64,000 nt of DNA. It comes from Haliotis rubra (Eukaryota). The position numbers and the translations under genes are program-made. Positions 2,426 through 30,021 of the stretch are shown piece after piece. The stretch's first letter is position 1; each line of letters opens with the position of its first letter. Location of the stretch: positions 682,001 through 746,000 of the forward strand of contig NW_025767213.1 in assembly GCF_003918875.1 (NCBI RefSeq). The letters run 5' to 3'. The notes beneath the pieces are model-generated. The model had not been told where the DNA came from and did not search any database. It saw only the letters and a list, made by a program, of their open reading frames with translations.

Positions 2426-2469
2426 TATTTATACCAGGGTCCCTTTCTTTCATTACATCTCTGTATGAG
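2426..2469 (+). promoter_or_regulatory. TATA-like box and short non-coding first exon of paralog A
   Basis: TATTTATA at 2426-2433, donor GAG|GTGAGG at 2470, acceptor AAACAG at 2546 just before the ATG at 2556. Same layout as paralogs B and C. Confidence 0.55.
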
Positions 2470-2555
2470 GTGAGGTTTTTTAGGCAGGTTTACCCTACTT
2501 TTCATAAAATACCCATGTTGAAATATGTCTCCTGTATTTTAAACAGACACCATAT

Positions 2556-4728
2556 ATGGCTGTGAGCATCCAGGCAGTGTGCGCGCTCGCCTTGTGTCTC
2601 GCCTATGTCGGCACCCATGTGATCAAGAGAGGTACATGTCAACAACATCTACTTATTCTTATTTCTTTACCGTCAAATGTTCACACCGCAATATTTGGTT
2701 TGAACTATTAAAAACAACATACCAGAGTCATCTATTATCCATCCACCATCCATCTTCACTATCAGTTGTAGTCCATTATCATGGTTGCAGAATACATTGT
2801 GCCTAGATGGTCATGTAATATTACAGTGTCAGATGTATTTAACCTTTCTGTTTGCACAGAGACTACATGTGCAGACAATAACTGTAAGTACATGGGGAAG
2901 TAAATAACTGTAGATACATTTATAAGAATATATAAGAACGAACTTGGTAACGTTCAGAACTCGGTAAAGTTAAGAACACAGCTAAGAACACAGTTAAGAA
3001 CCGTAAGTGAACATATGTACTGAACTAGAGCTACAAGTGAACGTAAGCAAATGCCCAAGGCAGTGAGTAACGGTTAGTGATGCTGCCTGCAGTAGTAAAT
3101 GACATATTGTTAAATGTAACTAATCTAAATGTATTATAGCATTAATAGGTATTTTTCCTCAGTTAGTATTTCGAGGCCGCTGTGGAAGTCTGTTGACAGT
3201 TTTGTACATGTTTGACCACTTTACCCTACAGCCTGCCCTAAACCCGGGGGTGGATGTGTTCCTGTCAACCAAACCTACGAACTAAGCCATTGTTCTAAGC
3301 TGAAATGCACTTTGGAGTCCAATGTATATTGGCTCCGCGGTAACATGGGTACGTTACATAGAACCGTACAGCTAAATTTAATGTCTTTATCTGTAATTTA
3401 TCATGTGTCCAGATAAAACCATTATTCCATGATATACAGCTTCCTGCCTCTTTCCGGGGCGGTGGGGTAGCCTAGTGGTTAAAGAGTCCGCCCCTCACGA
3501 CGAAGCCCGGATTTGATTCCCAACATGGGTACAATGTTTGAAGCCCATTTCTGGTGTCATCCGCCCTGATGTTGCTGGAATATTGCTAAGAAGCGGCGTA
3601 AAACCATACTCACTCACTTGCCTCTTTCCAGTAAGTAAACATCTTAGCACCAATACCTGACATGTTGATTCACTCCACTCACTTGGACTACTTCGTTCAT
3701 AACACAATTTTAATCTCCGTTGAAGGATGTGCCACCTTAGCTGGGAGTTGCGTCAACGTTGGCCAGATATATTCATACAACGCCTGTACAAATGTCACCT
3801 GCACGTCCGTTAACTCGTCTCTCATATTCAAGGGCACTTATAGTAAGTTCTACTTCGTATCTGCACGTTATATCTAACTCGTTTGTAGAGATATTGACAT
3901 TTCCCAATAATTAGATTACTCAAGTTTACTCAATTTACTTTTCTTGTAATAGTCGCAGTGGCTGAGCGGTCTAGGCGGCTGACTTTGTGTGCTGGAGATT
4001 AGGTGCCTGACTCTGAGGGTATGGGTTCGAATCCCGGATGGGGCTCAACTCAAAAAAAGTACTAGAATTTGCACTTTACTAAAAAAGTGTAATCCCAAAT
4101 ATAACACATGTTACCTTCACCACTTTCTAAATGGCATTGTGTAATCATAGATTTTCTTGTAATAAAAACGAAACTATTTTCAGGTTGTGCCCATGGTGAC
4201 CCAATATTTTGCTATGGACAGGGTGCAAATGTAACCATCGACGGCTGTAAACACACATGTGTGTTAAGTGGAAACACCATCGGCTTTATGAAAATCAATT
4301 CTAGTAAGTTCATTTCAAAACTTCATTTCTTTCATTTCTCTCTTTCCTACTTAGTCCTTAGTACTAAACATACCACCGACAAAAAATGTCCTCATTTCTT
4401 GTTTATCTTGAAAATATTTATTTCGATAAATGTCTGTACTACAAACAGCATGTGTTGTAAATGGAGAACTGCACGTTCATCCTCATGTTCTTGCACGACT
4501 TCATGCAAGTGAACTTTCATTGGTTGTCAATTGCAAATGAACTTTAAAAAATGTATAATTAGATACTCGATATCGGTTTCTCTACGTCACTGTCAGTGTT
4601 TTGCATTGTGTACTAAATTATGGTTTTCGTCAGATAATTAAACCTGATACGAGTCACAATTTATATGGACATGTTGGAATGATGTCCAACACAGATGAAA
4701 ATCTTGCTGTGTTCCAGATTGCGGATAA
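2556..4728 (+). CDS. Secreted cysteine-rich modular protein, paralog A (154 aa, 3 modules), multi-exon
   Basis: Coding exons 2556-2631, 2860-2883, 3232-3348, 3726-3842, 4184-4303, 4718-4728. All introns are GT-AG and phase 1. Joined ORF: MAVSIQAVCALALCLAYVGTHVIKRETTCADNNSCPKPGGGCVPVNQTYELSHCSKLKCTLESNVYWLRGNMGCATLAGSCVNVGQIYSYNACTNVTCTSVNSSLIFKGTYSCAHGDPIFCYGQGANVTIDGCKHTCVLSGNTIGFMKINSNCG*. Hydrophobic N-terminus (signal peptide), AATAAA at 4786, and exon sizes and phases match two downstream paralogs. Confidence 0.88.
3456..3618 (+). mobile_element. tRNA-derived SINE, family 1, (CACT)n tail
   Basis: A box TAGCCTAGTGG, B-box-like GATTTGATTCC, tail ACTCACTCACT. 11-bp TSD TGCCTCTTTCC at 3445-3455 and 3619-3629. 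Several copies occur in the window. Confidence 0.88.
3952..4151 (+). mobile_element. tRNA-derived SINE, family 2
   Basis: A box TGGCTGAGCGG and B box GGTTCGAATCC, with a non-tRNA body. 13-bp TSD TTTTCTTGTAATA at 3939-3951 and 4152-4164. Confidence 0.8.
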
Positions 4729-4884
4729 GCTACACTACAGGGGCAGTACCAAACTACCAAAGTCGTTTGTTGGAAGAACAGCAGCAATAAATATATGATT
4801 TAGGACACTCATCATATTCTTGCTTGTTCTTTATGACGTATGGTGTAGCTCTAGCGTGGCCTCGCCGAACAGGTGATTATTTAC

Positions 4885-6496
4885 CTACAGAGGACCTGAT
4901 ATTAGTGCATTACTGTACTACAGAGAACCTAATATTAGTACATCGTTGTACTACGAAGGACCTGATATTAGTGCATTACTGTACTACAGAGGTACCGATA
5001 TTGGTGCATTACTGTACTACAAAGACCCTGATATTAGATCCCTGATATACTCAGGCTTGCCTACAGAGGACCAAACATGAGTGCATTATTGTACTGCGAA
5101 GGACCTGATATCAGTGCATTATTATACAACAGATGACCTGATGTCAGTGCATTATTGTACTACAGAGGAAATGATTTTACTGTATTACTGAACTACAGAG
5201 GTCCCGATATTAGTGCATTACTGTACTACAAAGGACCTCATATTAGTGCATTACTGTATTACAGAGGACCTCATATTAGTGCATTACTGAACTACTAAGG
5301 TCCCGATATTACAGCGTTACTGTACTACAGAGGACATCATATTAGTGTATTACAGAGGTCCCAATATTAGTGCATTACTGTACTACAAGAACTTGATATT
5401 AGTGCATTACTGTACTACAGAGGACCTGATATTAGTGCATTTTTGTACAACAAAGGACCTCATATTAGTGCATTACTGTATTACAGAGATAACGATAGTA
5501 GTGCATTACTGTACTACAAAGGACCTGACATTAATGCATGACTGTTCTACAAAGGACCTGATATTAGTCCATTCCTGTACCACAGAGGACCTGATATTAC
5601 TGCATCATTGTACTACAGAGGACCTCATATTACTGCATCATTGTACTACAGAGGACCTCATATTAGTGCATTATTGTACCACAGAGGACCTCATATTAGT
5701 GCATTATTGTACTACAGAGGACCTCATATTAGTGCATTACTGTACAACAGAGGACATGATATGCATTGCTATACTACGAAGGGCCTGATATTAATGCATT
5801 ACTATACTACAGAGGACCTGATATTACTGCATAGCTGTACTACGAAGGACCTGATATTAGTGCATTACTGTACTACAGGGGACCTGATATTAATGCATTA
5901 CTGTACTACAGAGGACCTGATTTTAGTGCATTATTGTACTATGAAGAACCTGATATTAGTGCATTATCGTACTTCAGAGGACCTGATATTAGTGCATTAT
6001 TGTACTACAGAGGACCTGATATTAGTGCATTATTGTACTACAGAGGACCTGATATTACTTCATCATTGCACTACAGAGGACCTCATATTAGTGCATTATT
6101 GTACTACAGAGGACCTCATATTAGTGCATTATTGTACCACAGAGGACCTCATATTAGTGCATTATTGTACTACAGAGGACCTCATATTAGTGCATTACTG
6201 TACAACAGAGGACATGACATGCATTGCTATACTACGAAGGGCCTGATATTAATGCATTACTATACTACAGAGGACCTGATATTACTGCATAGCTGTACTA
6301 CGAAGGACCTGATATTAGTGCATTACTGTACTACAGGGGACCTGATATTAATGCATTACTATACTACAGAGGACCTGATTTTAGTGCATTATTGTACTAT
6401 GAAGGACCTGATATTAGTGCATTATCGTACTTCAGAGGACCTAATATTAGTGCATTATTGTACTACAGAGGACCTGATATTAGTGCATTATTGTAC
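4885..6496. repeat. 33-bp minisatellite, left part (ACTACAGAGGACCTGATATTAGTGCATTACTGT)
   Basis: Dozens of tandem copies, which produce the spurious TTEDLILVHYC ORFs. Confidence 0.95.
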
Positions 6497-9051
6497 ATAT
6501 TCTACAAACAATTTTTCACCAACTAACCCATATGGAAGCACTAGGCAAATAAATAAGTAGGTAAAATACTTTTGGAGCAAGGATACAAATAACACTTTTC
6601 TAACAAATCTGACAAAAATGTTGCACAATTCCCATGACACGTTATCTAATTGGATAAATGAAAACATGGAAACTTCACTATCATTTCTCATAGACATGAT
6701 TCAAAATGCTGCTGATCACACAAAGGCAACATATGGTGGTACACCTGCACTAAAGATGAATACACAATCCTTATGGTGGGACCATGAACTCGAAGTTTTA
6801 AAACATCAGAAATACTCAGCTCTTAGAGCCCACAGAGACAAGAACACTGACATCAGTATTTACAAGAAATGCAAATATTTATTCAAAAGTACTTTTGCTA
6901 AGAAGAAAGAACAGTATTTGTGTAAGCAAAAAGAAGAATTAGTATCTGCAAGAAATGATCGAAAACTGTTTTGGAAAATAATTAAGCAAAATAGAAAAGC
7001 ATTTATCCCTAAAACTATAACAGATGACCAGTGGGTTAAACATTTTACAAGACTTCCTTGTCTGGACACTCACAATCCTTTACATGTAGCTAGTCTTAAC
7101 ACACATCACACCTCTGACGACACAGATGATGACTTGACAAATATCTTCAACAATATATTGCTCAAGGGCATATTTCCAAAAAGTTGGGGTAACAGTATTA
7201 TTTGTCCTTTAAATAAAACTGGAAGCAAACAAGACACAAACAACTATAGCAGTATTTCCCTTATTGACACAGCATGTAAAATATTTACCTCTATATTGAA
7301 TAAAAGACTACAGAAATGGTGTGAATTAAAACAAATAATAAGTGAATCTCAAGCCGGCTTCAGAGCCAACTACTCAACTACTGATCACATTTTTGCATTA
7401 CAGGCAATTATTCAAAAATATGCATGTAAGAAAAAAGAAAGGTTTTATAGCCTTTTCATAGATTTTTCAAAGGCCTTTGATAAAATAAGACATGATGTAC
7501 TTTTAAGATCTCTTCAAGTATTACAACATTATTGTCACGATGTATTCTCAACTTTCATCCTGTGTAAGAACAAACTGTGGGCTGTCATCATGCTCCACCT
7601 GTAATGTGGGTATCCGTCAGTGGTGCATATTAAGTCCACAAATGTTTATTATTTTTATAAATGAACTGTACAAGAAAATGTTAAATGATGGTGGTAAAGG
7701 TGTTTTTATTACACAAGCCATGGACAACCTATGTGCACTTATGTTTGCTGATGATATCTCAGCACTTGCTGACACATGTCACCTTTTACTAAAGAAGATT
7801 AATGTCTTAGAAACTGTGTGCAATGACACTGGAATGCAAGTCAATCTTAAGAAGACTAAAGTAATGGTATTTAGGAATGGTGGTCCTCTACGATCATATA
7901 AGAAAATGGCCAACAGATTGAATCTGTCTCTTGTTATAGATATCTGGGTATTGTCTTCACACCCAAGCTTGTGTGGAGCAAAGCACAACTATGTTTATCA
8001 TCTCAGGCTAACAAAGCAATTTTATCATTATTCAGTTTTCAAAGAAAAATTGGTAACATAGATGGCTGTGATTTATTTAGAATATTTGACTCAGTGATTG
8101 CACCTATACTCTGCTATGGCGCAGAAATATGGGGCACTGAATATTGTAAAGTTACTGAGGCCGTACAACTTAAGTTCTGTAAACAGTATTTAAGAGTAAA
8201 CAAATCTACGTTTAATGGTATGGTGTTAGGCGAGTGTGACAGACTCCCTCTCTAATGTGTTTATCTCTTGCGTGTTATTGAATACTGGTGTCGTCTCGTA
8301 CAATTACCTGAAAATAGGTTGCCTTGTCAATGTTATATTATGTTAAGATCTTTACATGAAGCTGGACGCACCACATGGGTTTCAAAGGTTAAACAATTAT
8401 TACTCAGGTATGGCTTTGGTTATGCTTGGTTTTATCAAGAAATTGGAAATGTTGGTATGTTCATTTCTCTTTTTAAACAAAGACTAAAGGATAATCTACA
8501 ACAGTCATGGTATTCATCAATACAGGATTCTTCAAAATGCTTATATTAAAAGCCATATAAATCTTTGTTGAATGTTGAAAGATATTTCTGTTCTGATATT
8601 TCAGTGTATCTGAAGATGTCTTTATCAAGATTTAGATGTAGCCAATTTAAGATAGCAGTAGAAACTGGAAGATATGGCAATATTGAACTAAGAGAAAGAC
8701 TTTGTATGTACTGCAAATCAAAAGGTCTGGATCATATTGAAAATGAATGGCATGTCATATTTGTGTATGGTTGTTATAAAGATTTAAGAGTCAAATACAT
8801 TGCTAAATATATACAAGAACCCTACACTGTACACACTATGATAAATCTGTTTCAAAATGAAAGTTATGATCTTATGTACAACATCGGCTTGTTTTTGTAC
8901 CATGTTAACAATATTGTAAATTCTAGAAACAAATGAGTGCTACGTATACCTTCTTAAAACATGCGCACGTGAAAGATATAAAAAAAACTATTATCTGTAT
9001 GTATTATGGGCCAGTGGCCTCCTTACTGAATAAACTGTCTGTCTGTCTGTC
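6497..9051 (+). mobile_element. 5'-truncated, decayed non-LTR retrotransposon (CR1/L2-group LINE, ORF2 reverse transcriptase)
   Basis: RT motifs across frameshifted ORFs: FPKSW..IICPL.K.G, ISESQAGFR, FIDFSKAFD, GIRQ.CILSP, MFADD, LCYGAEIWG, and C-terminal RFRCS..IAVETGRY..RLC..C..IENEWH. The 3' end has AATAAA (9029) and a (CTGT)n tail. 8-bp TSD TATTGTAC at 6489-6496 and 9052-9059. Several stops and frameshifts. Confidence 0.93.
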
Positions 9052-9545
9052 TATTGTACTACAGATGACCTAATATTACTGTATTACAGAGGACCTGATG
9101 TTAGTGCATTACTGTACTACAAAGAACCTGATATTAGTGCATTCTTGTACTACAGAGGACCTGATATTAGTGTATTACTGTATCAAAGAGGACCTGATAT
9201 TAGTGCATTACTGTACTACGAAGGACCTGATATCAGTGCATTACTGTACCATGAATGTGCCGATATTAGTGCATTACTGCACTACAGAGGATCTGATATT
9301 AGTGCATTTCTGCACCACAGAGGACCCGATGTTAGTGCATTACTGTACTACAGAAGACCTGATATTAGTGCATTACTGTACCATGAATGTCCCGATATTA
9401 GTGCATTACTGCACTACAGAGGATCTGATATTAGTGCATTTCTGCACCACAGAGGACCTGATGTTAGTGCAATGCTGTACCGCAGAGAACCTGATATTAG
9501 TGCATTACTGTACTACAAAGGACGTGATATTAGTGCATAATGGTA
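9052..9545. repeat. 33-bp minisatellite, right part, split from the left part by the LINE
   Basis: The same unit resumes immediately after the LINE TSD. Confidence 0.95.
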
Positions 9546-11680: not shown

Positions 11681-11975
11681 GTACACGTGCATATGGTTAA
11701 AACAAGGGTCAAAATAACAATGCAAACAAACATAACTATAATAGGAATATAAATGATTTTACGGGGATTAAAATCAAAGTTTTTGCGATCATATGTTTCC
11801 ACGTGTATAGTAGCGAAATCTGTAATCACGGTTACATACATGTACATGAACTGTTGAGCACTGATAGCACAACATGTGTTACCAGTTGATTGCATTTTGG
11901 GTTCGGACACATGTATGTTTCGGTAATATGAATTTGTGAAATTCGAGAACGTCTCGCCTGCTGTCAGTGTCCTGG

Positions 11976-12036
11976 TATATATTGCCGTGCACCACCTCCT
12001 TGTCATTCCGCTCAGATCCAGCACAGACACACTCAC
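11976..12036 (+). promoter_or_regulatory. TATA box and non-coding first exon of paralog B
   Basis: TATATATT at 11976, Inr-like TCATT about 27 nt downstream, donor CAC|GTAAGT at 12037, acceptor at 12380 before the ATG at 12390. Confidence 0.65.
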
Positions 12037-12389
12037 GTAAGTATTGGACTCCCTTGTGTAAGCTGTCGAAACATTATGTCAAAGAGCGGGAATTCTTCCA
12101 CTGCTTTCAAGTTGAAGAATACACATGGAAATGGAATAGAAATCCATCTTAGATTCGTTGTTCAAGTCAGCATTCGCTGCAAATTACGTGGTAAAAGGTT
12201 TGTAAAGATTCAGCATTTCATGTTAAAGCTGAGGGTTAATTGTAGTAAGTGGATGATCATTGCTTTATGCAGCAAGTTTGGAATTAATTATGTGGCCATG
12301 GATAAACAGAAAACGGAATGAATCAGCTTGTTACCCCTAGGTACAACAGCTAATTACTGTGTTTTTTGTATCTGACACAGAACGTCGTC

Positions 12390-15300
12390 ATGGGTTTGGT
12401 ATTTTATTCAGTCGGCGTCCTCGTCATGTACGTAACATGTATATCTACTCAAGCGGTTCAGAAAGGTGCGTATCTATATTTCCTTCCACGTTCACTTCCC
12501 AATAATGATTAACATAGAACAACTGTAACAGCACATAGTTACTACTTAGGGAAACATCGGGACGGTTTGAAGTCTTTCCCAGTTCATTGCTAACAGACCC
12601 AATTTCAATTTGACAACAACTGCCTAACATTCTTGCTATAAAGATACAGTAAGTACCGCACATATTGTTCAATGTAAGCCTCACAGATACTGGCCTAGTT
12701 TAGATAATCTTGTTTGGATACTGGGCATATTTACAGTGTTACAAGGTTACCATCATGCCATTAGCAGTGCTCCCTCCCCGAAATTCCTTGGACGTCGTGG
12801 ACAGTGTACTGCTTTGAAAATCTGCCAAGACTCTCCAAATTTCCCTAACATGATCTTTTCTGTAACGATAGTAAGCTATACCTGTGTGTTGATCATCACA
12901 CTTCAACAAACTTAACTCTGTAATCTTTTTTATTTTACAGCAGAGGACTGTGCAGCAAGTAGTTGTGAGTACAGAACTAGTGTAGCACTTGATGCTATAC
13001 AACTGAAAGTTTAATGTAACTTCAATGGCTAACTTCTATTTCTAGAACCATGTGATCATACTAATCGCACTTTCACCAAGATATAAAACGATATCCAGCT
13101 TCAAACAGATGAAATAAGGTTGCAAAACGATGGTTTTACTTTCCTAAACTATTAGCTCACTCAGCTGAAGACCAAGTACCCGAGGATGAAGGATGTTTCG
13201 TTTGCACGTCTCTATTGAGTAACACTTTGTTGTACAGATATAAGCTATCAGAAACAGAGCATACAATCTAGGAATTTTTCTATATATTTTTTTTTTAAAG
13301 TACAAACTTGCTAAGACACAAAATTATATAATGCCAACATCATCACTCAAGCAGTTACCCTGCATGATTCAAACAGAATGACATTTAATGATTTGTTTAG
13401 ATAAATCTGGAAACTTAATGGATACCATCGGCAAATTATAAATATAAAATCTACTACCAAGAAATGTTACCGGTGGACTTTCTTGCTGTATAGAGCTCGA
13501 GAAGCAAATATATATATATTTAATTTACAACAACAGCTAAAGTCCGAAATGACTATTAGGAGGATCATACAGACGTTTTTGTGAACATGCCCTGTATTCT
13601 AGAATGCTCTAACATTTGTTGTACACAAACATTGCTAATGTGTGTCTATTTATAACATAATTATGGGAACATCGTTCCTTTATACCTAAAGCTGCATCGA
13701 TGATTGATCTCTATGTGCCATGACTAATGCGAGTATTTGTCCATTTACCCTGCAGCTTGTCCTGCACCGGGTGGAGGCTGTGTTGCCCTTGGTGACCCCT
13801 TCATCCTGAACACCTGCACAACCCTCACCTGCACGGTGGAGAACAACATCTATGGACTTCGCGGGACAATGAGTAAGTTTATCAAGTAGTTTATGCTTAC
13901 GCCTGAATATTTGAGTCCTGTCTGCTCCTCTGTTTTGTAGTTTTGTAATACGCAAATGTGTGTGCAATTCGTTTCTCTGTTTTAAATTACGTGTGACTGG
14001 AAGTGGTCCTGTTTGTTTCGCTGGGTTATAGACGTCTGACAGGAAGTGGCCCTGATTGTCTCTCTGGGTTATAGGACGCCTGACTGGAAGTGGTACTGAT
14101 TGTATCTCTGGGTTATAGTACGTCTGACTGGAAGTGGTTCTGCTTGTTTCTGTAGGTCATAGGACGCCTGACTGGAAGAGGTCCTGGCTGTCTCTCTGGG
14201 TTGTAGGAGGCCTGACTGGAAGTGGTCCTGACTGTCTCTCTGGGTTATAGGACACCTGACTGAAAGTGGTCCTGACTGACTCTCTGGGTTATAGGACACC
14301 TGACTGAAAGTGGTCCTGACTGTCTCTCTGGGTTATAGGAGGCCTGACTGGAAGTGGTCCTGACTGTCTCTCTGGGTTATAGGACGCCTGACTGAAAGTG
14401 GTCCTGACTGTCTCTCTGGGTTATAGGAGGCCTGACTGGAAGTGGTCCTGACTGTCTCTCTGGGTTATAGGACACCTGACTGAAAGAGGTCCTGGCTGTC
14501 TCTCTGGGTTATAGGAGGCCTGACTGGAAGTGGTCCTGACTGTCTCTCTGGGTTGTAGGAGGCCTGACTGGAAGTGGTCCTGACTGTCTCTCTGGGTTAT
14601 AGGACACCTGACTGAAAGAGGTCCTGACTGTCTCTCTGGGTTATAGGAGGCCTGACTGGAAGTGGTCCTGACTGTCTCTCTGGGTTATAGGACACCTGAC
14701 TGAAAGAGGTCCTGGCTGTCTCTCTGGGTTATAGGAGGCCTGACTGGGAGTGGTCCTGACTGTCTCTCTGGGTTATAGGAGGCCTGACTGGAAGAGGTCC
14801 TGGCTGTCTCTCTGGGTTATAGGAGGCCTGACTGGAAGTGGTCCTGACTGTCTCTCTGGGTTATAGGACACCTGACTGAAAGTGGTCCTGACTGACTCTC
14901 TGGGTTATAGGACACCTGACTGAAAGTGGTCCTGACTGTCTCTCTGGGTTATAGGACGCCTGACTGGAAGTGGTCCTGACTGTCTCTCTGGGTTATAGGA
15001 CACCTGACTGAAAGAGGTCCTGGCTGTCTCTCTGGGTTATAGGAGGCCTGACTGGAAGTGGTTCTATCTGTCTCTCTCTGTTGTAGGATGCGTGACAGGA
15101 GCTGGAGACTGTAAAGATGTTGGCGAAACATACGAATTCAATGCATGTACAACTCTGACCTGCACTTTAACAGACAACTACCTCAGGTTTACAGGTGACT
15201 ACAGTAAGTATCACATCACATTTTGCGTCGACTGAATGATGTAACTCCTGGATATCTGGATAACTCGTTTCGTACCATTGCAAATCTGTAACTTGATATT

Positions 15301-16942: not shown

Positions 16943-18534
16943 TCAACTTGAGACCAGTCTGCTTCAAGTTACATTATATTTGACTGAAATAAACGATCAC
17001 ATGTTTCTGTTAATCATTTTCTTGGGTGTTTTGTTTCTGTTAACCTGTTCTCTGTTCAGTAGTTCTCTTCGACCGAAGTACATACACGTTTGTATTCTCG
17101 CACCACACAACAAAACCCAGACATATTCTACGACTGCTTGCTACAAAACTGAGAGTTTCCCTTCACCATATTTTAATATCCCCAGCTAAATTCCTGTACA
17201 TAAACACGTCGTGGACGCCCATGGTTCTGTTCCCACTGACTATCATTCAAACCACAATCTTGGTCTGTAAACCAACGTTTAAACACGTGTTCATGTGGCA
17301 TGTTTGAAGGCACGTTATGAAATGATGTCGTGGAGGTGCCGCTATACAAACCAACGATAATCTCTGAGCGTTTGTCAGAAATATACTGACAGTATAACTG
17401 CCACATAGCTGTGTTCGAGAATGAGTGAAACGCCTGTTGCAACTGACAATGGACAACACTTATTTCATAACGACACAATCACATACCCGGTTCTTACATA
17501 TGCTTATGCGATTAAGTAAAGCACGAACACGAAAATATGGTTGGATTTAAAAGAGTATAAGGCTTTTCTGTGAAGCTCTACATCATGTGGTAACCTTCAA
17601 CAAGGCACATATATTTCAGTGAAGCACCAAGCTTGTTTTGGCTTTAAAGAGTGCAGATATATATCAGTAAATAATAGCACCACAACACGTCTTGAACTTC
17701 TAGAGTACTGACATATTTGAGTTACCAGACAGGTTTATATTTATATTGTACATGATAATTACATATTACTGATGGTTCACTTGACATTGTCACAGATGTA
17801 AACTGAGCAAGTATTGTAAATATTGTGTCATTGATTGTAAATATTGTGTCATTGATTGTAAATTCCCATGGAGGAACAGTAACTACATTTAACGTTGAAC
17901 ATAAACAATATCGATTGATAGTCAATTAAATATTATATTGCTTGAAATGACTATAACGGAATGGGCACAACGCCATGCTTTTATGAACACGTTAAGGCGA
18001 ATATTCTCAGGAGCTTCGGCAATGTTAAACCAGATGTATAACCATGTGTGTTTCTCATCATCACTAATCCTTCCATTGGACCTCATTGTTCTAGATTAGT
18101 TAAGTGTGTTCCATTTGTAAGGTGTATGTGTCTGGTCAATTTGCGTTTAAATTTCAAACTGCAATTTATCTCACTGAACATAAAAAGATTTAACAATAGA
18201 GCATTTGCACCATTAAATCTCCAAAATATTTTCTCCCAAAGAGGAAAGATGAATTGAACCGATATGTCTATATCATGAATTAAGCACACCATAGCTTCAA
18301 GCGTAGACATGTGGAAGAAATCAACCGACACGACCAACACATGCTATCATCCACACAGAAATCGTCTGTTCATCAATGTCTGTGTTCAAGGTACCAATAA
18401 ACTCACATACAGTCCAACACGCAATCAATTCGGTAGCATTACAGCTGTTACTCCTTGCGAAAGTTGATAAATTTTTATTGTGAATTTGTTTGGTTTCAAA
18501 TTTGAGACTCCTCCTACTTGTTGCTTGTTGTTCC

Positions 18535-19611: not shown

Positions 19612-19842
19612 CATGTGTAGATCATATGTAGGATGGCATGTCCAGATAATTTCTAAATTCTTCTACTTTACTCTAAGTTATGGATTTCTCGGATCATTAA
19701 GGACTCATTACAGCTGTGACATACCGTGACCATGACGCTTCATTAACATCTCACAAAGAGGGGATACACATTTCTGCCAAGCCAAAGTCTTTTAATTCCA
19801 ACATAAGATTTAATGATCACATCACCTGTTACCGAGTACATG

Positions 19843-19903
19843 TATATAAGGTCGGCCTTCTATGTGCCCAGCCACTGTCTAACTCGAACTAAGACGCGCA
19901 TCT
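19843..19903 (+). promoter_or_regulatory. TATA box and non-coding first exon of paralog C
   Basis: TATATAAG at 19843-19850, donor TCT|GTAAGT at 19904, acceptor CTACAG at 20643 before the ATG at 20653. Confidence 0.65.
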
Positions 19904-20652
19904 GTAAGTATGTGTCTTCTATTATACAAACTATGGTGTCTGTTTGACATGGATGAGTGTTTCAGGCAGGACGAGGTATTAAAAGTCCCGTTATGCCCCA
20001 CTTGATCTAAAATAATGTATTTATTGAGCAGTAGAACTCTTAGATAAAAATTAGAAAGTTGTCAGGTAGTTCAATATGCACAAAGTAATTTCACAACTCT
20101 CAAAGTCATTTCACCACACTGTAACAAGTATAGGTAGCTTTGCATTCAACTATGCCAAACAAAGGTTGTTTTAGATGTCGTCCGTTCTGAGTATCAATAC
20201 AATGTTTAAAACCATTTTTAAACTCTGATTTTTTTAGTTAGCTCCATCAATTTGATACTGACCTTGAATAAACTGATGAGCATACATATGTTTTTCTCGT
20301 GCTTTTGGTATGGAAATTTCGACAGTACCGTACAGGTCCTAGCAGTACGAGACATGATGTTCCCGTATACATGCTATCAGTTAGAGCCCCCTACAAGTTT
20401 GTTAAAAACCTAGATTTTTTAACTACTGGAGAAGGATACCCGACAACTTGAAATGATTTAGTTTAAATGTTAAGACCAATTGTTATCTGCTGTTTTAAAA
20501 TGGCAATTATCTAATGTGCCTTTAACATTCAGGTTCATGACTTATTACATGTTTCAGCAATGTTTGGTGTAGTTTGATCTCATGTTCAGTTTCTTGATGT
20601 GAGCAGTCAGGTATACATTTTTGACTTTGTGTTTATGCTACAGAAAGTCGTG

Positions 20653-23600
20653 ATGGCTCGATTCATCCTCGCATCGTGTGTTCTTGCCGTATGTCTGGCA
20701 TACACTCTCGCTGGCGGCGCTATGGGAGGTGAGATTTGATGACCTTTTAACACTACAGATCCCCCTATTTACCATTAATGGACGTAACATTCTTCGCCCG
20801 AGTCAACAGTTTTACCCCAGTCCTCCACACCCGTCATATCAGTGCAGACCCACAACAGCTTGACTTCATGTGTGAACAGGAATGAGCCACAGGTATTACT
20901 GTGGACGGAGGCCCCCGAGTCCATGCATGTCATAGGCAATGCTTTGTGTTGGTTTTGATTGTCGTAACATGCGATATACACCTCGGACGTTCGTGGGAGC
21001 CCTGTAGAGATCGCTACAATCCACCATAATGCCGTCACTATTTGGATGTACTTGAACCGGCTTTTACAATAGTAAAACCCTCCTACACTAGTTAAACTTG
21101 GACAGATCGGTGTGAGGTATGATCTTATATTCAGGAACCAGGACCCAATGATATCAGAATGAATTTATCCCTAGAGGGTGTGTTCTCTTGTCACATTGCC
21201 ATCTTCAGCACTACGCCTATCTACAGTTCTATCAAATCATGCATATTATGTCATTCTTCAATATCACATTTATTCTGTGATGTCGTATACTCGTCACACA
21301 CTCCCCGTCACATCAAGTATTAATCTTTTTGTGATATCATTCTCTGTCAGATTAGGTATGAGTCTACGAATCTGTGATGTCATTCCATGATAGATGAGGT
21401 ATTAGTATGCGAATCTGTGATGTCATTCCATGATAGATGAGGTATTAGTATACGAATCTGTGATATTATCTATCGTCAGCTGAGTGCTTAGTCTACCTAT
21501 CAGTGATATCATTTCACATCAGCTGAATCCCTTGTCTACTCATCAATAATATCATTTCACATGATGCATTAGTCTTCCAGTCACACGATGTGTTAGTCTT
21601 CCAGTCACACGATGCATTAGTCTTCCAGTCACACGATGCATTAGTCTTCCAGTCACACGATGCGTTAGTCTTCCAGTCTCACGATGTGTTAGTCTTCCAG
21701 TCACACGATGCATTAGTCTTCCAGTCACACGATGCGTTAGTCTTCCAGTCACACGATGCATTAGTCTTCCAGTCACATGATGCATTAGTCTTCCAGTCAC
21801 ACGATGTGTTAGTCTTCCAGTCACACGATGTGTTAGTCTTCCAGTCACACGATGTGTTAGTCTTCTAGTCAACTATATATGGGGCTATGGCGACTAGTAA
21901 ACAGTACAACATGTTGTTTTGTCCACAGGTGATACTGGTGGTGCTAGTGGTGGTGGCGATGATGACTGCGCAGCCAAACAGTGTGAGTACAACCTCCATC
22001 GCGATGACGGAAATGTTCGCGGAGATTATTCACAGAGATAAAGTTTACTAGAATAATATTACTTTATTTTGCCCCAAATCAGAGAAATGTCCAACAATAT
22101 CTGTATGTGTGCTTTACCAACGATGATTTTCCTTATCTGAGCCTCGTGAATAGGTCACTCAGTCACAATCAGAAATATATCATGACAAACCGCACTCTCG
22201 TCCAGGAGTATTTCCGATAGTTCTGTGGAATTTCGATTTGTACACAGGCGCCTGAGCTACCTTACAGCCCATGTTCTCCCTGTGGGGTTTCCGTGTCAGA
22301 TTACTTCCCGAGGACCTTCCCGAGTAGTGTACAGTACACAACCCTGTGCACTTAAAAGAACCCACGAATCCGTTGGTATATGACCAGATAGTGGCCACAT
22401 GAATACGTGCAAACACCTAGTTGCGGGTACAGCAACGTGCAGTGAACTTGGACAAAATACTGTGACTATGTGTCCCAGTCCACCCAGCTGTGAATGGGTA
22501 CCTTGTTAGGATGAGAAAGCCACGATAACTCGGTGCGCCTAGTGGCTGCAAGAGTTGTATACTCCCCAGGGAGTTGAGATTGATAATAAGATGTGCCATT
22601 GAGATTGACATCCAATGATCGAGGGAAAAAATACCAGCGCCTTGAGCAAGCACTAGTGCGTGGATGTGTGCGCTATATAAATATCCTATATTAATATTAA
22701 TATCAATACCTTCGCTTGTATCGAGAACCAACTTATATGGATCACACAGTTCGAGTTGAATGTATATAACCGTATCCACATTGCTGCAAACAATTGTCGA
22801 GCTACTGGTTGTTCGTACTATAATACAACTATCATACAATAATACAAACTCATTCAAAGTACAGCTCCAGCACAGTCCAGGCAGACCATGCTCAACTAAA
22901 AGTTAGATTTTGAATTGTAAGTTACAATTATAGTAATCGTGACATTGCCTTCATCTAGTTACGATCGTCGCAGCGGCATGTGAGAGACATATGGTTTATG
23001 TTTGCAGCCTGCCCCAAGCCTGGTGGTGGATGTGTTGATCTTGGGGGCACCTATCAGCTGAACGCCTGCACCCCCCTGACATGCACAGTTGAGGGTAACG
23101 TCTACGGCCTCCGTGGAGACATGAGTAAGTTTATCAGTCCTTGGTTTACTGACAGGTACTAACCCAGTATATACACCTGTTAGAAAACAGTATATTTTGT
23201 GTGTAACACGTCCTGCATTTTAAAATAACTAGTTATATGCTTGGGCGGTCGTCGTCTTGTACAAAACAACCTGGCTGGTTGGTTGGCCGGCTGGCCGGCT
23301 GGCCGGACGGCACGTACATCGTCACGTCATAATGTGTGACGTCAACTGTTTTGTCTCGCCACAATTTGCAAGTGTGAGACACATATCTTCACTTACTAGC
23401 TCTCTGTAACATGTGAAATAAATGACAAAATCGTAAAATGTTCGGCCTCGTAGTGTTCAAGCTACCCTAGCTCGGAAAACCACGAACACCACGCCAGTAA
23501 CACATATAGCGTATAATGTATTCGATCTTTTCATTCACATGTCAAAAATACCATGTAATCTTCGATAAAGATAGATCAATGTCAGTAGATAAAGTATTAT

Positions 23601-26600
23601 TGTAATTTTTTGGTTGTTTGTCATTCAGTTCCCTAAACGTAATGGTTCGTGAATTGAATATAATTCAATATTTCAGAATGTGCCTTTGGTAGTGACTGTT
23701 TTGAAGGAGGTGTCAAGAAAACCTTTGGCAATTGTGAATATACGTGCTCAGTATCTGGCGTCATTGGGTTCATCCAGGATGACCCAGGTAAGTTGCCAGA
23801 GATAGAACGCTAGTCTTCTCACAACGAATGTACTGATGGTCTTCGACGCTCTGTGCCCTTCTCTCCAACAGAGCCCGTGTAACACAGAACGTGTTACGTA
23901 TTTAGGGGAGAACAGCCCCGGTTGGATCTTGTATTATAGGGGTAACGCTGCTTGTCAGGGCATTGTCATTTGCAGAAGCCCTACGTATTCAATTAACTGC
24001 CCGAAGAAGGAGTGAGTTGAAAAGACAGTGGGCTTCTCCAAATGATAATGCCCTTAGAAAGAGCGTTACCCCTATTATAGCTTAAATGGATGGAATGTAC
24101 TTTGGGGTTTACTTAAAACACCTCGCAACGGACTATTGACACAACACTGTAGGTCATGGAACAAGATTATGACGTCATGACGTTATGACGTCGTTATGCT
24201 GTGATGTCATTTGACAACAGAACTGATAATGATTAAGGAGTCAGCGCGGGCCATTATCATTTGCAGAGGGGGGTTCATGATAATTTATTCCATTTCAGCT
24301 ATAAAGACGATCTAACTCTTTCACCAGCCCCGTGACATATAATACCATTCAATGTCCAATACCACGTGTGCCTCTCCCATAATGCCCCGCGACATAAACT
24401 AGCGAACAAAAGAAAGTTATCACCGACTTCACAAGACAAAGGTGTATGTGAGATTTATGATAATTATATTACATGCAGAAATCATTCTCCAATAATGTGA
24501 TTGCTGGTCTTGCAAAAAGTGCATAAAGAGTCACATAATGAGACAGAAGTCAGGGGACACGACATAAATAGCGAGTGTGACCACCCTGGGCACTCACTGA
24601 CGTCAGCAGTCGACGGATGACGTCAGCAGGAATCTTGTTCCTAAGTCCAAGGGAGTCTGCTCAAGTTCCTGTCGGTTCGCTGGAGGTGCTACACGCTGTC
24701 TCAGCTGACGATCAAGATGATCTCAGAGACGTTCAATGGGGTTCATGTCTGGAGAAGGCAATACGCTGACGTTAACGTCGTGCAGGTATTCTCGAACAAT
24801 TCTGGCGGTGTGAGGCTTTGCGTTGTTGTGCTGCAAAATGATTCATCTTGGCTGTTGTCGAATAAAGGTCTCAGCACTTCATCCCTGTATCGCTGGGCAT
24901 TCTGATTTCCTCGGATGATAACCAGCCTTCTTTTCTCTGGCCACAAACGCTGCCCCATACCACCTCTATCGAACGGATGAACTTGAACGCAGTTTGGCTC
25001 CAGTCAGTCTCTACTACGTCGATAAATTCGAATTCTGTCATCGTTTCTTAACAGTCTGAACAGACTTTCATGTGTAAAGAGCACTCTCTCCCAGTCATCT
25101 CGCTACCACCTACGTACAGTTCGTGTCCAGTCTGCGTTGACTGTGTAGACGGGTCAAGGCCATATCACGGAAGGGGCGGTAGGCTCGTATACCAGCCATA
25201 CCAAGTCGTCGCGGGACTGTTGATGGCGTCTCCTTGTCTTGTAACTAATCTATTCCTGAGGTGGATCTGCCGGATGTAGCAGTCTTCGGTCGGTGTCGTG
25301 ACTCTTGGTCTTCCCAATCATTGGCTTGTTTGGTGGTAGCGGTTTGTGATGGTGGCCTGGCTACAGCTGAAGGTTCTTGCCAGCTGACGCTGTAAAGAAC
25401 CCATATTGACCATATCGATGACCCTGTCTCGTTAGGGTTTGCGTAGGTCTTGGCATATTCGTTACTACATGCTTGCTCTGTCCAACATTGCTAAATATGC
25501 CACAATCAAGCACGTGCAATTGGACCAATGTTCCACAATTACGTAATGCCATGTATTCCCCTCCCATACAGCCCCAGAGTGAAAACCTTCAATGTATAAT
25601 ACCATGTATTCCCCTCCCATACAGCCCTAGAGTGAACCTTCAATGTATAATGCCATGTATTCCCCTCCCATACAGCCCTAGAGTGAACCTTCAATGTATA
25701 ATACCACGTGGATCTACTCCAATACAGCCCTAGAGTGAACCTTCAATGTATAATGCCATGTATTCCCCTCCCATACAGCCCTAGAGTGAACCTTCAATGT
25801 ATAATGCCATGTATTCCCCTCCCATACAGCCCTAGAGTGAACCTTCAATGTATAATACCACGTGGATCTACTCCAATACAGCCCTATAAATGAACCTTCA
25901 ATGTATAATACCATGTATTCTCCTCCCATACAGCCCTAGAGTGAACCTTCAATGTATAATACCACGTGGATCTACTCCAATACAGCCCTATAAATGAACC
26001 TTCAATGTATCATGCCATGTATTCCACTCCCATACAGGCCTAGAGTGAACCTTCAATGTATAATACCACGTATTGCCCTCCCATACAGCCCTAGAGTGAA
26101 CCTTCAATGTATAATACCACGTATTGCCCTCCCATACATCCCCAGAGTGAACCTTCAATTTATAATACCGCGTATTCCCCTCCCATACGGCCCTAGAGTG
26201 AACCTTCAATGTATCATGCCATGTATTCCCCTCCCATACAGGCCTAGAGTGAACCTTCAATGTATAATACCACGTATTGCCCTCCCATACATCCCCAGAG
26301 TTAACCTTCAATGTATAATACCGCGTATTCCCCTCCCATACAGCCCTAGAGTGAAACTTCAATGTATCATGCCATGTATTCCCCTCCCATACAGCCCTAG
26401 AGTGAACCTTCAATGTGTAATACTATGTATTCCCCTCCCATACAGCCCTAGAGTGAACCTTCAATGTATAATACCATGTATTCCCTTTCCATACAGCTCT
26501 AGAGTGAACCTTCATTGTATAGAGCATGTATTTCCCTCCCATACAGCCCTAAAGTCAACCTTCAATGTATAGGGCATGTATTCCCCTCCCACACATCCCT

Positions 26601-27818
26601 AGAGTCAACCTTCAATGTATAATACCATGTATTCCTATCCCACACAGATCTGGAGTGAACCTTCAATGTATAATACCATGTATTTCCCTCCCATACAGCC
26701 CTAGATTGAATCTTCAATGTATAATGCCACGTGTTCCTCTCCCATACTGCCCTAGAGTTTACCTTCAATGTATAATACCACGTATTCCCCTCCCATACAG
26801 CCCTAGAGTGAACCTTCAATGTATAATACCACGTATTCCCCTCCCATACTGCCCTAGAGTTTACCTTCAATGTATAATACCACGTATTTCCCTCCCATAC
26901 AGCCCCAGAGTGAACCTCCAATGTATAATACCACGTATTCCTCTCCCATACAGCCCTAGAGTTTACCTTCACTGTATCATGCCATGTATTCCCCTCCCAT
27001 ACAGCCCTAGAGTGAACTCTTCAATGTATAATACCATGTATTCCCTCCCATACAGCCCTAGAGTGAACCTTCAATGTATAATACCATGTATTCCCTTCAC
27101 ATACAGCCCTAGAGTGAACCTTCAATGTATAATACGATGTATTCCCCTCCCATACAGCCCTAGAGTGAACCTTCAATGTATAATACCACGTATTCCCCTC
27201 CCATACAGCCCTAGAGTGAACCTTCAATGTATAATACCACGTATTCCCTCCCATACAGCCCTAGAGTGAACCTTCAATGTATAATACCATGTATTCCCCT
27301 CCCATACAGCCCTAGAGTGAACCTTCAATGTATAATGCCTTATATTCCCCTCCCATACAGCCCTAGAGTGAACCTTCAATGTATAATACCATGTATTCCC
27401 CTCCCATACAGCCCTAGAGTGAACCTTCAATGTATAATACCACGTATTCCCCTCCCATACAGCCCTAGAGTGAACCTTCAATGTATAATACCATGTATTC
27501 CCTTCACATACAGCCCTAGAGTGAACCTTCAGTGTATAATGCCATGTATTCCCCTCCCATACAGCCCTAGAGTGAACCTTCAATGTATATTACCACGTAA
27601 TTCTCCCCTACGCAACTCTAAAATGTACCTTCAATGTACAATACATGTTTTCTAATTCAGTCCTTGAATGTACCCTGGTATGTGTAATATCATGTTTCCT
27701 CGCTCTCCTCTAACTAGTACAGCGCCACGTCCACTTCCTACCAGCAGTATTCTATAGTTACAGATATGAACATACAACTAACAATTTCTTCTTTTTTTCA
27801 GCGTGTTCGAATGAGTAG
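20653..27818 (+). CDS. Secreted cysteine-rich modular protein, paralog C (124 aa, 2 modules), multi-exon
   Basis: Coding exons 20653-20728, 21929-21982, 23008-23124, 23677-23787, 27802-27818 (GT-AG, phase 1). Protein: MARFILASCVLAVCLAYTLAGGAMGGDTGGASGGGDDDCAAKQSCPKPGGGCVDLGGTYQLNACTPLTCTVEGNVYGLRGDMKCAFGSDCFEGGVKKTFGNCEYTCSVSGVIGFIQDDPACSNE*. AATAAA at 27900. Confidence 0.87.
21560..21872. repeat. 24-bp minisatellite (TTAGTCTTCCAGTCACACGATGCA)
   Basis: About 13 near-identical copies, with more diverged related units at 21340-21560. Confidence 0.93.
22415..22702 (+). mobile_element. SINE fragment with CORE/Deu-like central domain and L2-like 3' tail
   Basis: CCACCCAGCTGTGAATGGGTACC core-like segment. 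The 3' end AGCGCCTTGAGC...GTGCGCTATATAAAT plus short AT repeats is typical of L2-mobilised SINEs. Confidence 0.6.
23936..24075. repeat. Inverted repeat (hairpin), probably part of a non-autonomous DNA element
   Basis: ATAGGGGTAACGCT..GGGCATTGTCATTTGCAGAAGCCC pairs with GGGCTTCTCCAAATGATAATGCCC..AGCGTTACCCCTAT. A related half copy lies at about 28641-28720. Confidence 0.65.
24540..25540 (-). mobile_element. Decayed Tc1/mariner transposase remnant
   Basis: Minus-strand fragments LVIIRGNQNAQRYRDEVLRP, LQHNNAKPHTAR and PSPDMNPIERL, interrupted by frameshifts and stops. Confidence 0.85.
25545..27640. repeat. 51-bp minisatellite (ATGTATTCCCCTCCCATACAGCCCTAGAGTGAACCTTCAATGTATAATACC) in the last intron of paralog C
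   Basis: About 40 tandem copies, source of the VNLQCIIPCIPLPYSPR ORFs. Confidence 0.95.
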
Positions 27819-30021
27819 GGCAAATGCAAGTGTCGCACAACTTGGAAGCAGCAAAGTCATTGTAACGTAACGTCACTTTGATGGATCAGGGAACTGTGCA
27901 ATAAATCTTAAAATAACATCTCGTACCCCTTTCTTGTGTGTTTGTTTTCGGGTTTGGGGTATGTCTATATTATTACTTTTTTCAATCGTGGCCACCATTC
28001 AGAAGTTTGAACTTACAGAGTAAAGTTTGAGAAAGGCATAGACTTTTATGATGCAAGTAAAACACGAGTGTTGGATTTGGTTGATCTACCAAGATAAGTC
28101 GAAGGACAACCGTTATGTTTTCTCCTACTGTATGTAATGTTAAGGGCTAAGATCACCTCAGTGGACTGGCGGTACGTACACGTCGTGGCCCAGCTCATGC
28201 AGTCACATTGTCACAAGGGCTCTTCAACGTTCACTTTGTTGTGAAAACGTTATTCTGTGGACTCCCATTTACGTTGTCACAACGTTGTGGCCTGAGATTT
28301 TACGTCGCCACAAGGTTAAATGTATTGATGCTAACGTATTTTACGTTGTCTTAACGTTCTATTTAAAGTCAATAGTTGAAGAGTTTTGTGAACAGTACAT
28401 AAGAAACAAAGCATAAATTCACTTCAATGTTTATTCGTCGATGTGCATGTTGTTTTGGTCGTGTGTTTTCTGAAGCTGTAGCTGAATAGTGAAGACAGAA
28501 TAGCAAAGTGATAAGTTTTACACAAAGCTCTATGGTGACACCAAGTTATAACAAACGTTGTTATAACGTTGTGAGGAGCCCAAAGCATAACGTTTCCTCA
28601 TCGTAAATTTGCAATGTTGTTATTACGTTGTGACATTACGTATACAAGGGGGACGCTATTTTTCAGGGCAGTATCAGATGCAGAAGCCCGAGGCCTTTCT
28701 TTAACTGCCCGACGAAGAAGTCTGTTGTATTTTCCGAAAATACCACACCTCAAATAAAACTAATTTAGCGAGGAATTATATGAATTTAGCAACCTTAATG
28801 AGGACATTAAAGGAATCAATATAAACTGCGAGCACAGATATACAAACCTAGAGATATTCTCGGGGGAAGCGGGATTCGAACCTGCCACGGTTAGTGACGC
28901 AGCTCTGCATTTCCAACTGCGAACTTACGACAAAGAGAACCCCGTGCCAGTATACTACAGAATACATGTAGTTATAACAAAGGTTATGCAGGTCATAACA
29001 CAACTCACAATCAAAACAGAAACGTTTTAGAATGTTCTTACTGTTGTAAAATCGCTCCTCCACAATAACAAATGATGACTTTCCTCATACATTTTCTCAA
29101 ATATATGTTTCCAAATTTAAGGAAATCATACGTCCATCGTCTAAGAAGATATAAATAACAAATTCAAACTCATTTGGAAAAGAATCGGTCAAAATAATTC
29201 TATGAATTAGACCATATTGGGCAGTGTATTCCCAGAAGAGCAGAGCAGGAGCGAGGTAGAGCTCCAAATCTCGTTCTGGATTAAAGATTTTGACCTCTAG
29301 TCGTGAAAACACGTCCATGTCTACTGCAACACAACTGTGATAGAAGTCCCACTACCTGCACCAAAGCTGTTAGCACTTCAAACATTCCAGTTTGAATTAT
29401 TTTAGATACGGGTACTTCAGCTAAACTACGATATAAGTACTTCCTGTTCCCGAAAAAGGATGATACCTGCCCCTCTATGGTATTTGGTACGTTGACGCCA
29501 GTTTGTGCTCTGGACAAGACGTAATGCATGGACTTCTGGATTACCGGAGCAAGTGTCACCTGAACTGCGCTAAACCCTCCTTGGTGCTGGCGGTCTTAAC
29601 TGTTTGGTATGTGAGGGAAGACACTGATTGGAGACACCGAAAGGCTTCACTATCCGCCGACTGAGTACTTTCTGCTTTACAGACAGTGGCATCAGGGCCG
29701 ACACCCGCGCACTAAGCGCAGAATGGTTAAACCAGGGGTTCCTCCGTCACCCCTATCAACATCAGAACTTACCATTGGTAGTATACCTTCCTTCTCTTAG
29801 AATACGGTGCGTCAACTTCTCTGGCTTCTTCTGTCCTTCCCTTGACTCTACTTTAATGAATTACGTGATTTGCACGAACTTCCCAGAATCAAGTATGCCC
29901 GATACGTGGCGCGGTACCTTGTCAATAATAACTTATTTCTGATCTTATTTGTGATCTCACCTACCTTATGGTGTTAGTGTTACATAAAATAGTTTTTCTA
30001 ACATACCGTCGTCAAATATGT

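Follow-up and report, generated by a model that had tools for sequence, protein, structure and literature searches.

We analysed a window of 64,000 nucleotides (nt) from the abalone Haliotis rubra (NCBI RefSeq assembly GCF_003918875.1, contig NW_025767213.1, positions 682,001 to 746,000 of the forward strand; all coordinates below are those of the window unless stated otherwise). Three tandem paralogous genes, here called A, B and C, lie on its + strand with intact reading frames and one common plan. Each encodes a predicted secreted protein of two or three short four-Cys modules, and each module is predicted from structural modelling to fold as a fibronectin type I-like (FN1-like) finger. We think it probable, on balance, that the three products are extracellular binding or adaptor proteins, a role that we infer from their likeness to families discussed below.

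Gene models and transcripts

Exon assembly from the window gave the same order of parts in all three genes. A signal-peptide exon with precisely 76 coding nt is followed by a micro-exon with a single Cys (24 nt in A, 24 nt in B, 54 nt in C), by two or three module exons of 111-120 nt, each encoding 36-39 amino acids (aa) with four Cys, and by a terminal exon whose 11-17 coding nt supply one Cys and the stop. GT-AG dinucleotides bound the introns at all coding junctions, every intron is in phase 1, and an AATAAA signal lies 46-82 nt past the stop, at 4786 in gene A, 16988 in gene B and 27900 in gene C. Each gene also has a TATA-like box ahead of these parts (2426 in A, 11976 in B and 19843 in C), and a GTRAG donor comes 44-61 nt after it. 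Exons are numbered here from the putative non-coding exon 1, so that the signal-peptide exon of gene A is exon A2 and its first module exon A4. The features are listed below.

Gene A (LOC124292552, XP_046585642.1), + strand, 154 aa; coding segments 2556-2631, 2860-2883, 3232-3348, 3726-3842, 4184-4303, 4718-4728
2426-2469, + strand: TATA-like box and putative short non-coding exon 1, donor at 2469/2470 (from sequence only)
2547-2631, + strand: exon 2, signal peptide, with 9 nt of 5' untranslated region (UTR) and 76 coding nt, ATG at 2556 (sequence; an X1 contig covers exactly 2547-2631)
2860-2883, + strand: micro-exon, 24 nt, one Cys (required for exact identity to XP_046585642.1)
3232-3348, + strand: module exon 1, 117 nt, four Cys (profile; an X2 contig starts at 3232; an X1 contig joins it to the next exon)
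3726-3842, + strand: module exon 2, 117 nt, four Cys (X1 contig across the whole exon, spliced on both sides)
4184-4303, + strand: module exon 3, 120 nt, four Cys (X1 contig enters precisely at 4184)
4718-4791, + strand: terminal exon, 11 coding nt, one Cys, stop at 4726-4728, 3' UTR, AATAAA at 4786 (sequence, RefSeq identity)

Gene B (LOC124292539, XP_046585616.1), + strand, 151 aa; coding segments 12390-12465, 12941-12964, 13756-13872, 15087-15203, 15498-15608, 16932-16942
11976-12036, + strand: TATA-like box and putative short non-coding exon 1, donor at 12036/12037 (sequence; block conserved in H. rufescens)
12390-12465, + strand: signal-peptide exon, 76 coding nt (sequence, RefSeq identity)
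12941-12964, + strand: micro-exon, 24 nt, one Cys (sequence, RefSeq identity)
13756-13872, + strand: module exon 1, 117 nt (sequence, profile, RefSeq identity)
15087-15203, + strand: module exon 2, 117 nt (sequence, profile, RefSeq identity)
15498-15608, + strand: module exon 3, 111 nt (sequence, profile, RefSeq identity)
16932-16993, + strand: terminal exon, 11 coding nt, one Cys and stop, AATAAA at 16988 (sequence, RefSeq identity)

Gene C (LOC124292540 isoform X1, XP_046585617.1), + strand, 124 aa; coding segments 20653-20728, 21929-21982, 23008-23124, 23677-23787, 27802-27818
19843-19904, + strand: TATA box (TATATAA) and putative short non-coding exon 1 (sequence; block conserved in H. rufescens)
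20653-20728, + strand: signal-peptide exon, 76 coding nt (sequence, RefSeq identity)
21929-21982, + strand: micro-exon, 54 nt, Gly/Asp-rich, one Cys (sequence, RefSeq identity)
23008-23124, + strand: module exon 1, 117 nt (sequence, profile, RefSeq identity)
23677-23787, + strand: module exon 2, 111 nt, of the C-terminal module type (sequence, profile, RefSeq identity)
27802-27905, + strand: terminal exon, 17 coding nt, one Cys and stop, AATAAA at 27900 (sequence, RefSeq identity)

The translations of A, B and C were identical, letter for letter, to the RefSeq proteins XP_046585642.1 (P0021), XP_046585616.1 (P0001) and XP_046585617.1 (P0037), all three of which are named 'uncharacterized protein [Haliotis rubra]' and have the same exons as our models. 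A preliminary description of this DNA, made from the letters alone, had called the cluster hidden; that word has to be withdrawn, because LOC124292552, LOC124292539 and LOC124292540 are already annotated, and no new gene is therefore reported here. Its account of three intact + strand genes with a shared architecture, from the 76-nt signal exon and one-Cys micro-exon through the module exons of 111-120 nt to the tiny terminal exon and AATAAA, was recovered in full, with exon assembly and exact RefSeq identity in agreement. The conserved Cys spacing that it proposed was also the same when recomputed in the mature proteins, as 5-6-11-4-14(-6-11-4-14)-5/7-11-3-14/15. RefSeq additionally lists an isoform X2 of gene C (121 aa) with three residues fewer within the Gly-rich micro-exon 21929-21982, at which no obvious canonical alternative acceptor was found. 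A literature search on the RefSeq and Lottia identifiers (the latter belonging to relatives introduced below) returned no papers, and broader abalone searches turned up nothing specific.

Each protein begins with a hydrophobic stretch of ~20 residues encoded on its own exon, and no further hydrophobic stretch follows. These features fit the view, already taken in the preliminary description, that A, B and C encode small, putatively secreted, disulfide-rich modular proteins of 124-154 aa with a predicted signal peptide, as does the pLDDT of below 50 at residues 3-25 in the structural model of the gene B protein described below. Total Cys counts are 14 (A), 14 (B) and 10 (C), all even. Outside the modules there is one extra Cys per end, invariant in 9/9 Haliotis sequences; the N-terminal one lies 5 residues ahead of the first module, the C-terminal one lies 14-15 residues past the fourth Cys of the last module, and the protein ends 0-4 residues beyond the last Cys.

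Read contigs (Logan) were examined for gene A only, in runs X1 and X2, which are RNA by the tool's guess, and in X3, a DNA run. One 246-nt X1 contig aligned to 3282-3347, 3725-3842 and 4184-4245 and thus joined exons A4, A5 and A6 at the predicted sites, so that the A4/A5/A6 junctions of the preliminary description were matched in a probable RNA run. A second X1 contig matched exactly 2547-2631, from the acceptor to the donor of exon A2, and a contig from run X2 began exactly at 3232, the start of exon A4. Depth of the contigs at gene A was low, about 3-4, and the DNA run X3 gave even cover over the whole stretch except at two SINE-like (short interspersed nuclear element-like) repeats. Taking X1 and X2 as RNA on the tool's guess, gene A is shown to be transcribed, at a low level at least. 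The proposed 5' end fared less well. A TATA box with a short non-coding exon had been claimed for each gene, and TATA-like boxes with donors are present, but the X1 contig over exon A2 carries 107 extra nt upstream that could not be placed within 2300-2546 and do not fit the proposed exon 1, which is only ~14 nt long. The real first exon of gene A may lie farther upstream than the TATA box at 2426, or this X1 contig may be chimeric.

Several introns of these genes hold repeats. The two SINE-like repeats lie in introns of gene A (~3450-3620 and ~3950-4150); the first starts like a tRNA, and both are very high-copy sequences whose depth is enormous in every run and reaches millions in the DNA run. 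Most of intron 4 of gene B is taken up by a 44-bp minisatellite (13994-15100; 25 copies, 90% identity) that runs up to the acceptor of exon B5, and its unit resembles that acceptor junction, with a pyrimidine tract, TAG and then GA. The 4-kb last intron of gene C contains a 51-bp satellite (25544-27652; 41 copies, 88% identity), which gives rise to long spurious open reading frames (ORFs) on either strand and makes the GC skew strongly negative at 26-28 kb. Short minus-strand ORFs in the same intron (24723-24958) resemble by eye a decayed Tc1/mariner-type transposase; a 71-aa piece of them had no Pfam match.

Conservation and wider relatives

A profile built from the eight module exons and run over the 1.38-Gb H. 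rubra genome scored these exons at E 1.5e-17 to 7.5e-11, with the remaining genome matches at E of at least 0.01. This gap between the eight exons and all other matches argues that their likeness is not due to chance. The paralogs are 39-54% identical to B, and modules are closest by position in the protein (A4/B4/C4, A5/B5 and A6/B6/C5), so that the three-module plan is older than the duplications and the middle module is absent from C.

The corresponding H. rufescens locus (L021), reached via the ortholog of B, has three genes, encoding 154, 151 and 154 aa, in the order A-B-C on a single strand, and A, B and C each have a 1:1 ortholog there. Module exons are 82-88% identical between the two species, the micro-exon of C is 75% identical, and the H. 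rufescens exons have canonical splice sites. The exon 1 regions of genes B and C lie inside blocks conserved in H. rufescens (11813-12060, 73% identity, and 19692-19926, 72% identity). For gene B, nonsynonymous (dN) and synonymous (dS) divergence between H. rubra and H. rufescens were 0.106 and 0.47, giving dN/dS of 0.22 for the whole protein and 0.16 for the mature part; for gene A, the values were 0.124 and 0.50, with dN/dS of 0.25 and 0.21, respectively. Genes A and B are thus shown to be under purifying selection. With 1:1 orthologs and dN/dS of 0.16-0.25 for A and B, the idea that these genes evolve fast finds no support, and the strong divergence among the paralogs reflects old duplications rather than rapid evolution.

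Orthologs were also found in H. asinina and H. cracherodii, which makes four Haliotis species in all, and H. rufescens has two additional two-module genes (LOC124146176 and LOC124146179). To call the family lineage-expanded, as the preliminary description did, was generous: there are three genes in H. rubra and five on record in H. rufescens, counting three at the locus and these two. When a profile of nine full-length proteins was searched against 5.8 billion clusters with a restriction on length, it returned Haliotis proteins only, all of them unnamed, and in this comparison the short protein form was found only in Haliotis.

The module itself is more widespread. A family profile made from 12 module exons gave, in a search of 1.84 billion proteins, 19 clusters, including larger secreted relatives with 2-16 modules. 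They come from Lottia gigantea (957 and 266 aa), Patella (694 and 901 aa, the 901-aa protein having an apextrin C-terminal domain), Gigantopelta, Biomphalaria, Bradybaena and Nucella, and from the nemertean Tubulanus. Single modules are found too in H. rufescens proteins 347 and 381 aa long; the counterparts of these in H. rubra lie on different contigs (L014 and L011). Closer to the cluster, 35-40 kb upstream on the same contig, lies the gene for XP_046585660.1, a secreted 933-aa H. rubra protein with the automatic name 'extracellular matrix protein A-like' (loci L009 and L010, G000:C2323:641789-646129). Its module exons are in phase 1 and match the profile weakly, and in the protein the four-Cys module recurs in at least 13 copies, in alternation with a shorter unit that also has four Cys, C-x5-C-x7/8-C-x2-C. 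The three short genes may derive from this gene or be its sisters.

Three of the database matches were set aside. A lobster 'kielin/chordin-like' protein (P0008) reached E 1.9e-12, but this score is the sum of 23 stretches of 2-11 bits each on the motif W-x-x-D-P-C-T-x-F-T-C-T; we rejected it as close kin and take the match as a fold-level echo in repeats that resemble von Willebrand factor type C (VWC) domains. Matches in Durusdinium and ENA sequences (P0018 and P0019) were treated as chance. Judged by profile comparison, the module belongs to a family that has no Pfam entry and occurs in gastropods and one nemertean; within this family the abalone trio is a short form restricted to the genus, and recognition of the family is new.

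Predicted fold and role

An AlphaFold2 model of the gene B protein (P0001), built on an alignment of nine sequences, had a mean predicted local distance difference test (pLDDT) score of 81 and a predicted template modelling (pTM) score of 0.62. The pLDDT was about 90 in the mature part (84-94 across residues 31-150), fell below 50 at residues 3-25 and had a mean of 53 for residues 21-30. In the model a unit of five strands, with two short strands ahead of three longer ones, occurs three times. In a Foldseek search of the Protein Data Bank (PDB), tandem FN1 modules came out on top (probability 0.87-0.98, E 1.5e-3 to 0.1) and were the best solved matches. VIA-align, run over 48,161 chains, returned 22 with Z of at least 2, among them ten FN1 fingers, five VWC domains, two mucins and one chicken beta-microseminoprotein (MSMB3). 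The FN1 structure 2cg6 superposed on module 1 (Z 4.2, root-mean-square deviation (rmsd) 2.4 Å over 42 residues), six others on module 2 (3mql, 1e8b, 1qo6, 3m7p, 4bdx and 8os5; 1.6-2.1 Å over 36-40 residues), and the tPA finger 1tpn across modules 2-3 (3.0 Å over 44 residues); the 8-9FnI pair 3ejh was also returned. The VWC domains were those of NELL2 (Z 3.7), CCN3 (Z 3.0), VWF C6 and C4 (both Z 2.6) and collagen IIA (Z 2.6), and FN1 domains superposed better than VWC domains (rmsd 1.6-2.5 Å, over 37-42 residues of single modules, versus 5-9 Å). In the ESM Atlas, the nearest cluster was PF23003, the nematode MIG-18-like Fn1_2 family, with a TM score of only 0.41 by query over 105 residues; rows 2-4, 6 and 8 were VWC families. 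Because three independent searches, by Foldseek, VIA-align and ESM Atlas, agree, we take the module as an FN1-like finger, one per exon. In this model-based prediction, each module is a two-stranded sheet packed on a three-stranded sheet, and the whole protein is built of two or three such fingers, arranged as a rod or a bundle.

Searches with sequence families gave a different picture from that of the fold. No family matched when Pfam was run on the eight module exons and the full-length Haliotis proteins at E up to 10, in keeping with the earlier statement that no named family could be recognised; the sole row, Toxin_6, scored 17.3 bits against a cut-off of 25 over 16 residues and was rejected as chance. 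P0001, P0021, P0037, P0005 and single modules were unmatched by PF00039 (fn1; gathering score 27 bits) at E up to 10, and the Biomphalaria relative P0026 had 10.4 bits to this model in its C-terminal domain only. PF23003 (Fn1_2; 27 bits) matched none of the Haliotis proteins. Among the larger relatives, P0015 passed its threshold with 28.9 bits, and P0012 and P0017 fell below it with 23.9 and 21.7 bits; in all three the PF23003 regions coincided with the residues found by our module profile, the 70-position Pfam model corresponding to two consecutive modules. PF00093 (VWC) and PF05825 (PSP94) likewise gave no Pfam match, the C-x2-C-x-C and CC-x2-C motifs of the former and the ten-Cys two-domain pattern of the latter being absent from the sequences. 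PDB sequences gave chance matches only (E at least 0.9) against the profile, and an ESM Atlas search by sequence features returned no usable match. The loose resemblance to FN1 and VWC repeats suggested in the preliminary description thus stands as a likeness of fold, backed by the AlphaFold2 model and the structure searches, and not as membership in either sequence family.

Proteins made only of FN1-like, VWC or Fn1_2 units bind other proteins outside the cell, and it is because of this that a binding or adaptor role suggests itself for A, B and C. Fibronectin fingers use beta-strand addition to bind fibrin, collagen and bacterial adhesins, BMPs are ligands of VWC domains, and nematode MIG-18, described below, is a further example of such a protein. 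By analogy, the abalone proteins would act on matrix, on mucus components or on another secreted protein, with the exposed beta-sheet edges of the modules docking onto these matrix or secreted partners. The two conserved terminal Cys could pair with each other or link molecules. For the remaining disulfides, we considered either a chain that joins nearest neighbours from module to module or a pair of bonds within every module.

Several observations weigh against this interpretation. The absolute structural scores are low (Foldseek E at least 1.5e-3, VIA-align Z at most 4.2), as is to be expected for domains of ~40 residues, and are not decisive; the P0001 model was built on just nine sequences; and the fn1, Fn1_2, VWC and PSP94 models found no match in the Haliotis proteins even at E 10. 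The Cys pattern is unlike that of FN1, with C-x3/4-C in place of C-x-C and no Cys after strand E. Evidence of transcription comes from a few low-depth contigs of gene A only, in runs that are RNA by the tool's guess. The part given to the terminal Cys is a guess.

The FN1-like fingers could also be read as the first subdomain of VWC domains, in which case the proteins would modulate growth factors by binding BMP/TGF-beta-type ligands as chordin, CV2 and CCN do. Consistent with this idea are the five VWC domains in the VIA-align list (Z 2.6-3.7), the VWC families in the ESM Atlas rows and the 23 weak profile stretches in a lobster protein with VWC-like repeats. We nonetheless regard it as improbable, since the lobster stretches amount to 2-11 bits each on one short motif, Pfam VWC finds no match, the VWC motifs and the entire second subdomain are absent, and FN1 domains superpose more closely. 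That lobster protein, which also contains 21 Pfam PSP94 stretches, bears as well on whether A, B and C are serum or mucosal proteins of the MSMB/PSP94 type, which would bind CRISP-type proteins or proteases or be antimicrobial; its repeats, however, look like VWC and not like true MSMB. The abalone proteins are of similar size, secreted, all-beta and Cys-rich, and chicken MSMB3 superposed on module 3 (rmsd 2.5 Å over 37 residues), but its Z of 2.2 is at the reporting floor, no Haliotis protein matches Pfam PSP94, and the ten-Cys pattern is missing, so that an MSMB-type role seems very unlikely.

Somewhat better placed, and still rather unlikely in our estimate, is a structural role in mucus, adhesive or shell matrix, with the proteins polymerised or cross-linked by intermolecular disulfides through their end Cys. 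The invariance of these Cys outside the modules, the location of the N-terminal one within residues 21-30, the low-confidence first block past the signal peptide, and the 933-aa 'extracellular matrix protein A-like' gene upstream all fit such a role. It is countered by the even Cys count, which would allow every Cys to pair within the molecule, by the very low read depth in the runs examined, and by the main text of the Lottia shell-proteome paper, in which the Lottia relatives were not found. Joined to the proposal that the 36-39-aa four-Cys module is an uncatalogued lophotrochozoan branch of FN1/VWC, with the abalone proteins joined head to tail by disulfides into chains or cross-links within mucus, adhesive or matrix, this idea is in our view unlikely; if true, it would define a new kind of small polymerising finger protein. 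That the gene models are artefacts or decaying pseudogenes might be suspected from exons that are all 120 nt or shorter and from thin transcript evidence confined to gene A, yet identical, independent RefSeq models, spliced contigs for gene A, intact frames, and orthologs conserved in four Haliotis species with dN/dS of 0.16-0.25 contradict this explanation, the most improbable one.

A probable fold is now assigned to abalone proteins named only "uncharacterized", and this assignment is new. It should help with the annotation of mollusc secretomes (mucus, shell and haemolymph) and with following the FN1/VWC fold beyond the chordates. The result opens no long-standing question: the genes had been annotated before, and the abalone family is small and evolves at an ordinary rate.

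Neighbouring sequences and known systems

Between genes A and B (4885-6496, 6618-8058 and 9075-9538), reverse-transcriptase ORFs split by a frameshift (Pfam RVT_1, E 1e-12 and 1e-10) are bordered on both sides by one 33-bp satellite, and the arrangement looks like a retroelement inserted into a satellite array. Downstream of the cluster, on the minus strand, 37026-37454 encodes the TM6-TM7 (transmembrane segments 6 and 7) end of a rhodopsin-family G-protein-coupled receptor, with a Pfam 7tm_1 match (E 7e-9) and an NPxxY-type motif; this frame is probably the last exon of a receptor gene.

Among characterised systems, the closest are FN1 fingers, MIG-18-like Fn1_2, the first subdomain of VWC and, less closely, MSMB. 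Both the FN1 modules of fibronectin, tPA and factor XII (PF00039) and the abalone modules have ~40 residues, four Cys, a two-stranded sheet on a three-stranded sheet (predicted in the abalone modules) and one phase-1 exon per module, both occur as tandem arrays in secreted proteins, and FN1 modules gave the best solved structural matches. FN1 has C2-x-C3 in strand D, a C4 that is located within strand E or past it, and disulfides 1-3 and 2-4. The abalone pattern, by contrast, is C-x5-7-C-x11-C-x3-4-C, with no C-x-C and no Cys within the fifth strand or just past it, and because the Cys positions differ the module is no canonical FN1 member. To our knowledge, canonical F1 modules have been described from chordates only, whereas the abalone is a mollusc.

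The first subdomain of VWC shares with the abalone modules an FN1-like beta-hairpin with a G-x-x-Y/W ... C-x-x-x-x-C-T type motif, and its structural matches were weak; the abalone modules differ in having neither the second subdomain nor the C-x2-C-x-C and CC-x2-C motifs. MSMB/PSP94 and the snake small serum proteins are likewise small, secreted, all-beta and disulfide-rich, with MSMB3 as the one weak match, but MSMB has ten Cys in another pattern and the MSMB3 score was at the reporting floor. Finally, C. elegans secretes MIG-18, which serves the ADAMTS protease MIG-17 as a cofactor and is located in basement membranes (PMC4856095). MIG-18-like Fn1_2 proteins resemble A, B and C in being small secreted invertebrate proteins composed solely of FN1-like Cys-rich units; they differ in that PF23003, whose 70-position model equals two abalone modules, leaves the Haliotis proteins unmatched, and the latter have no known ADAMTS link.

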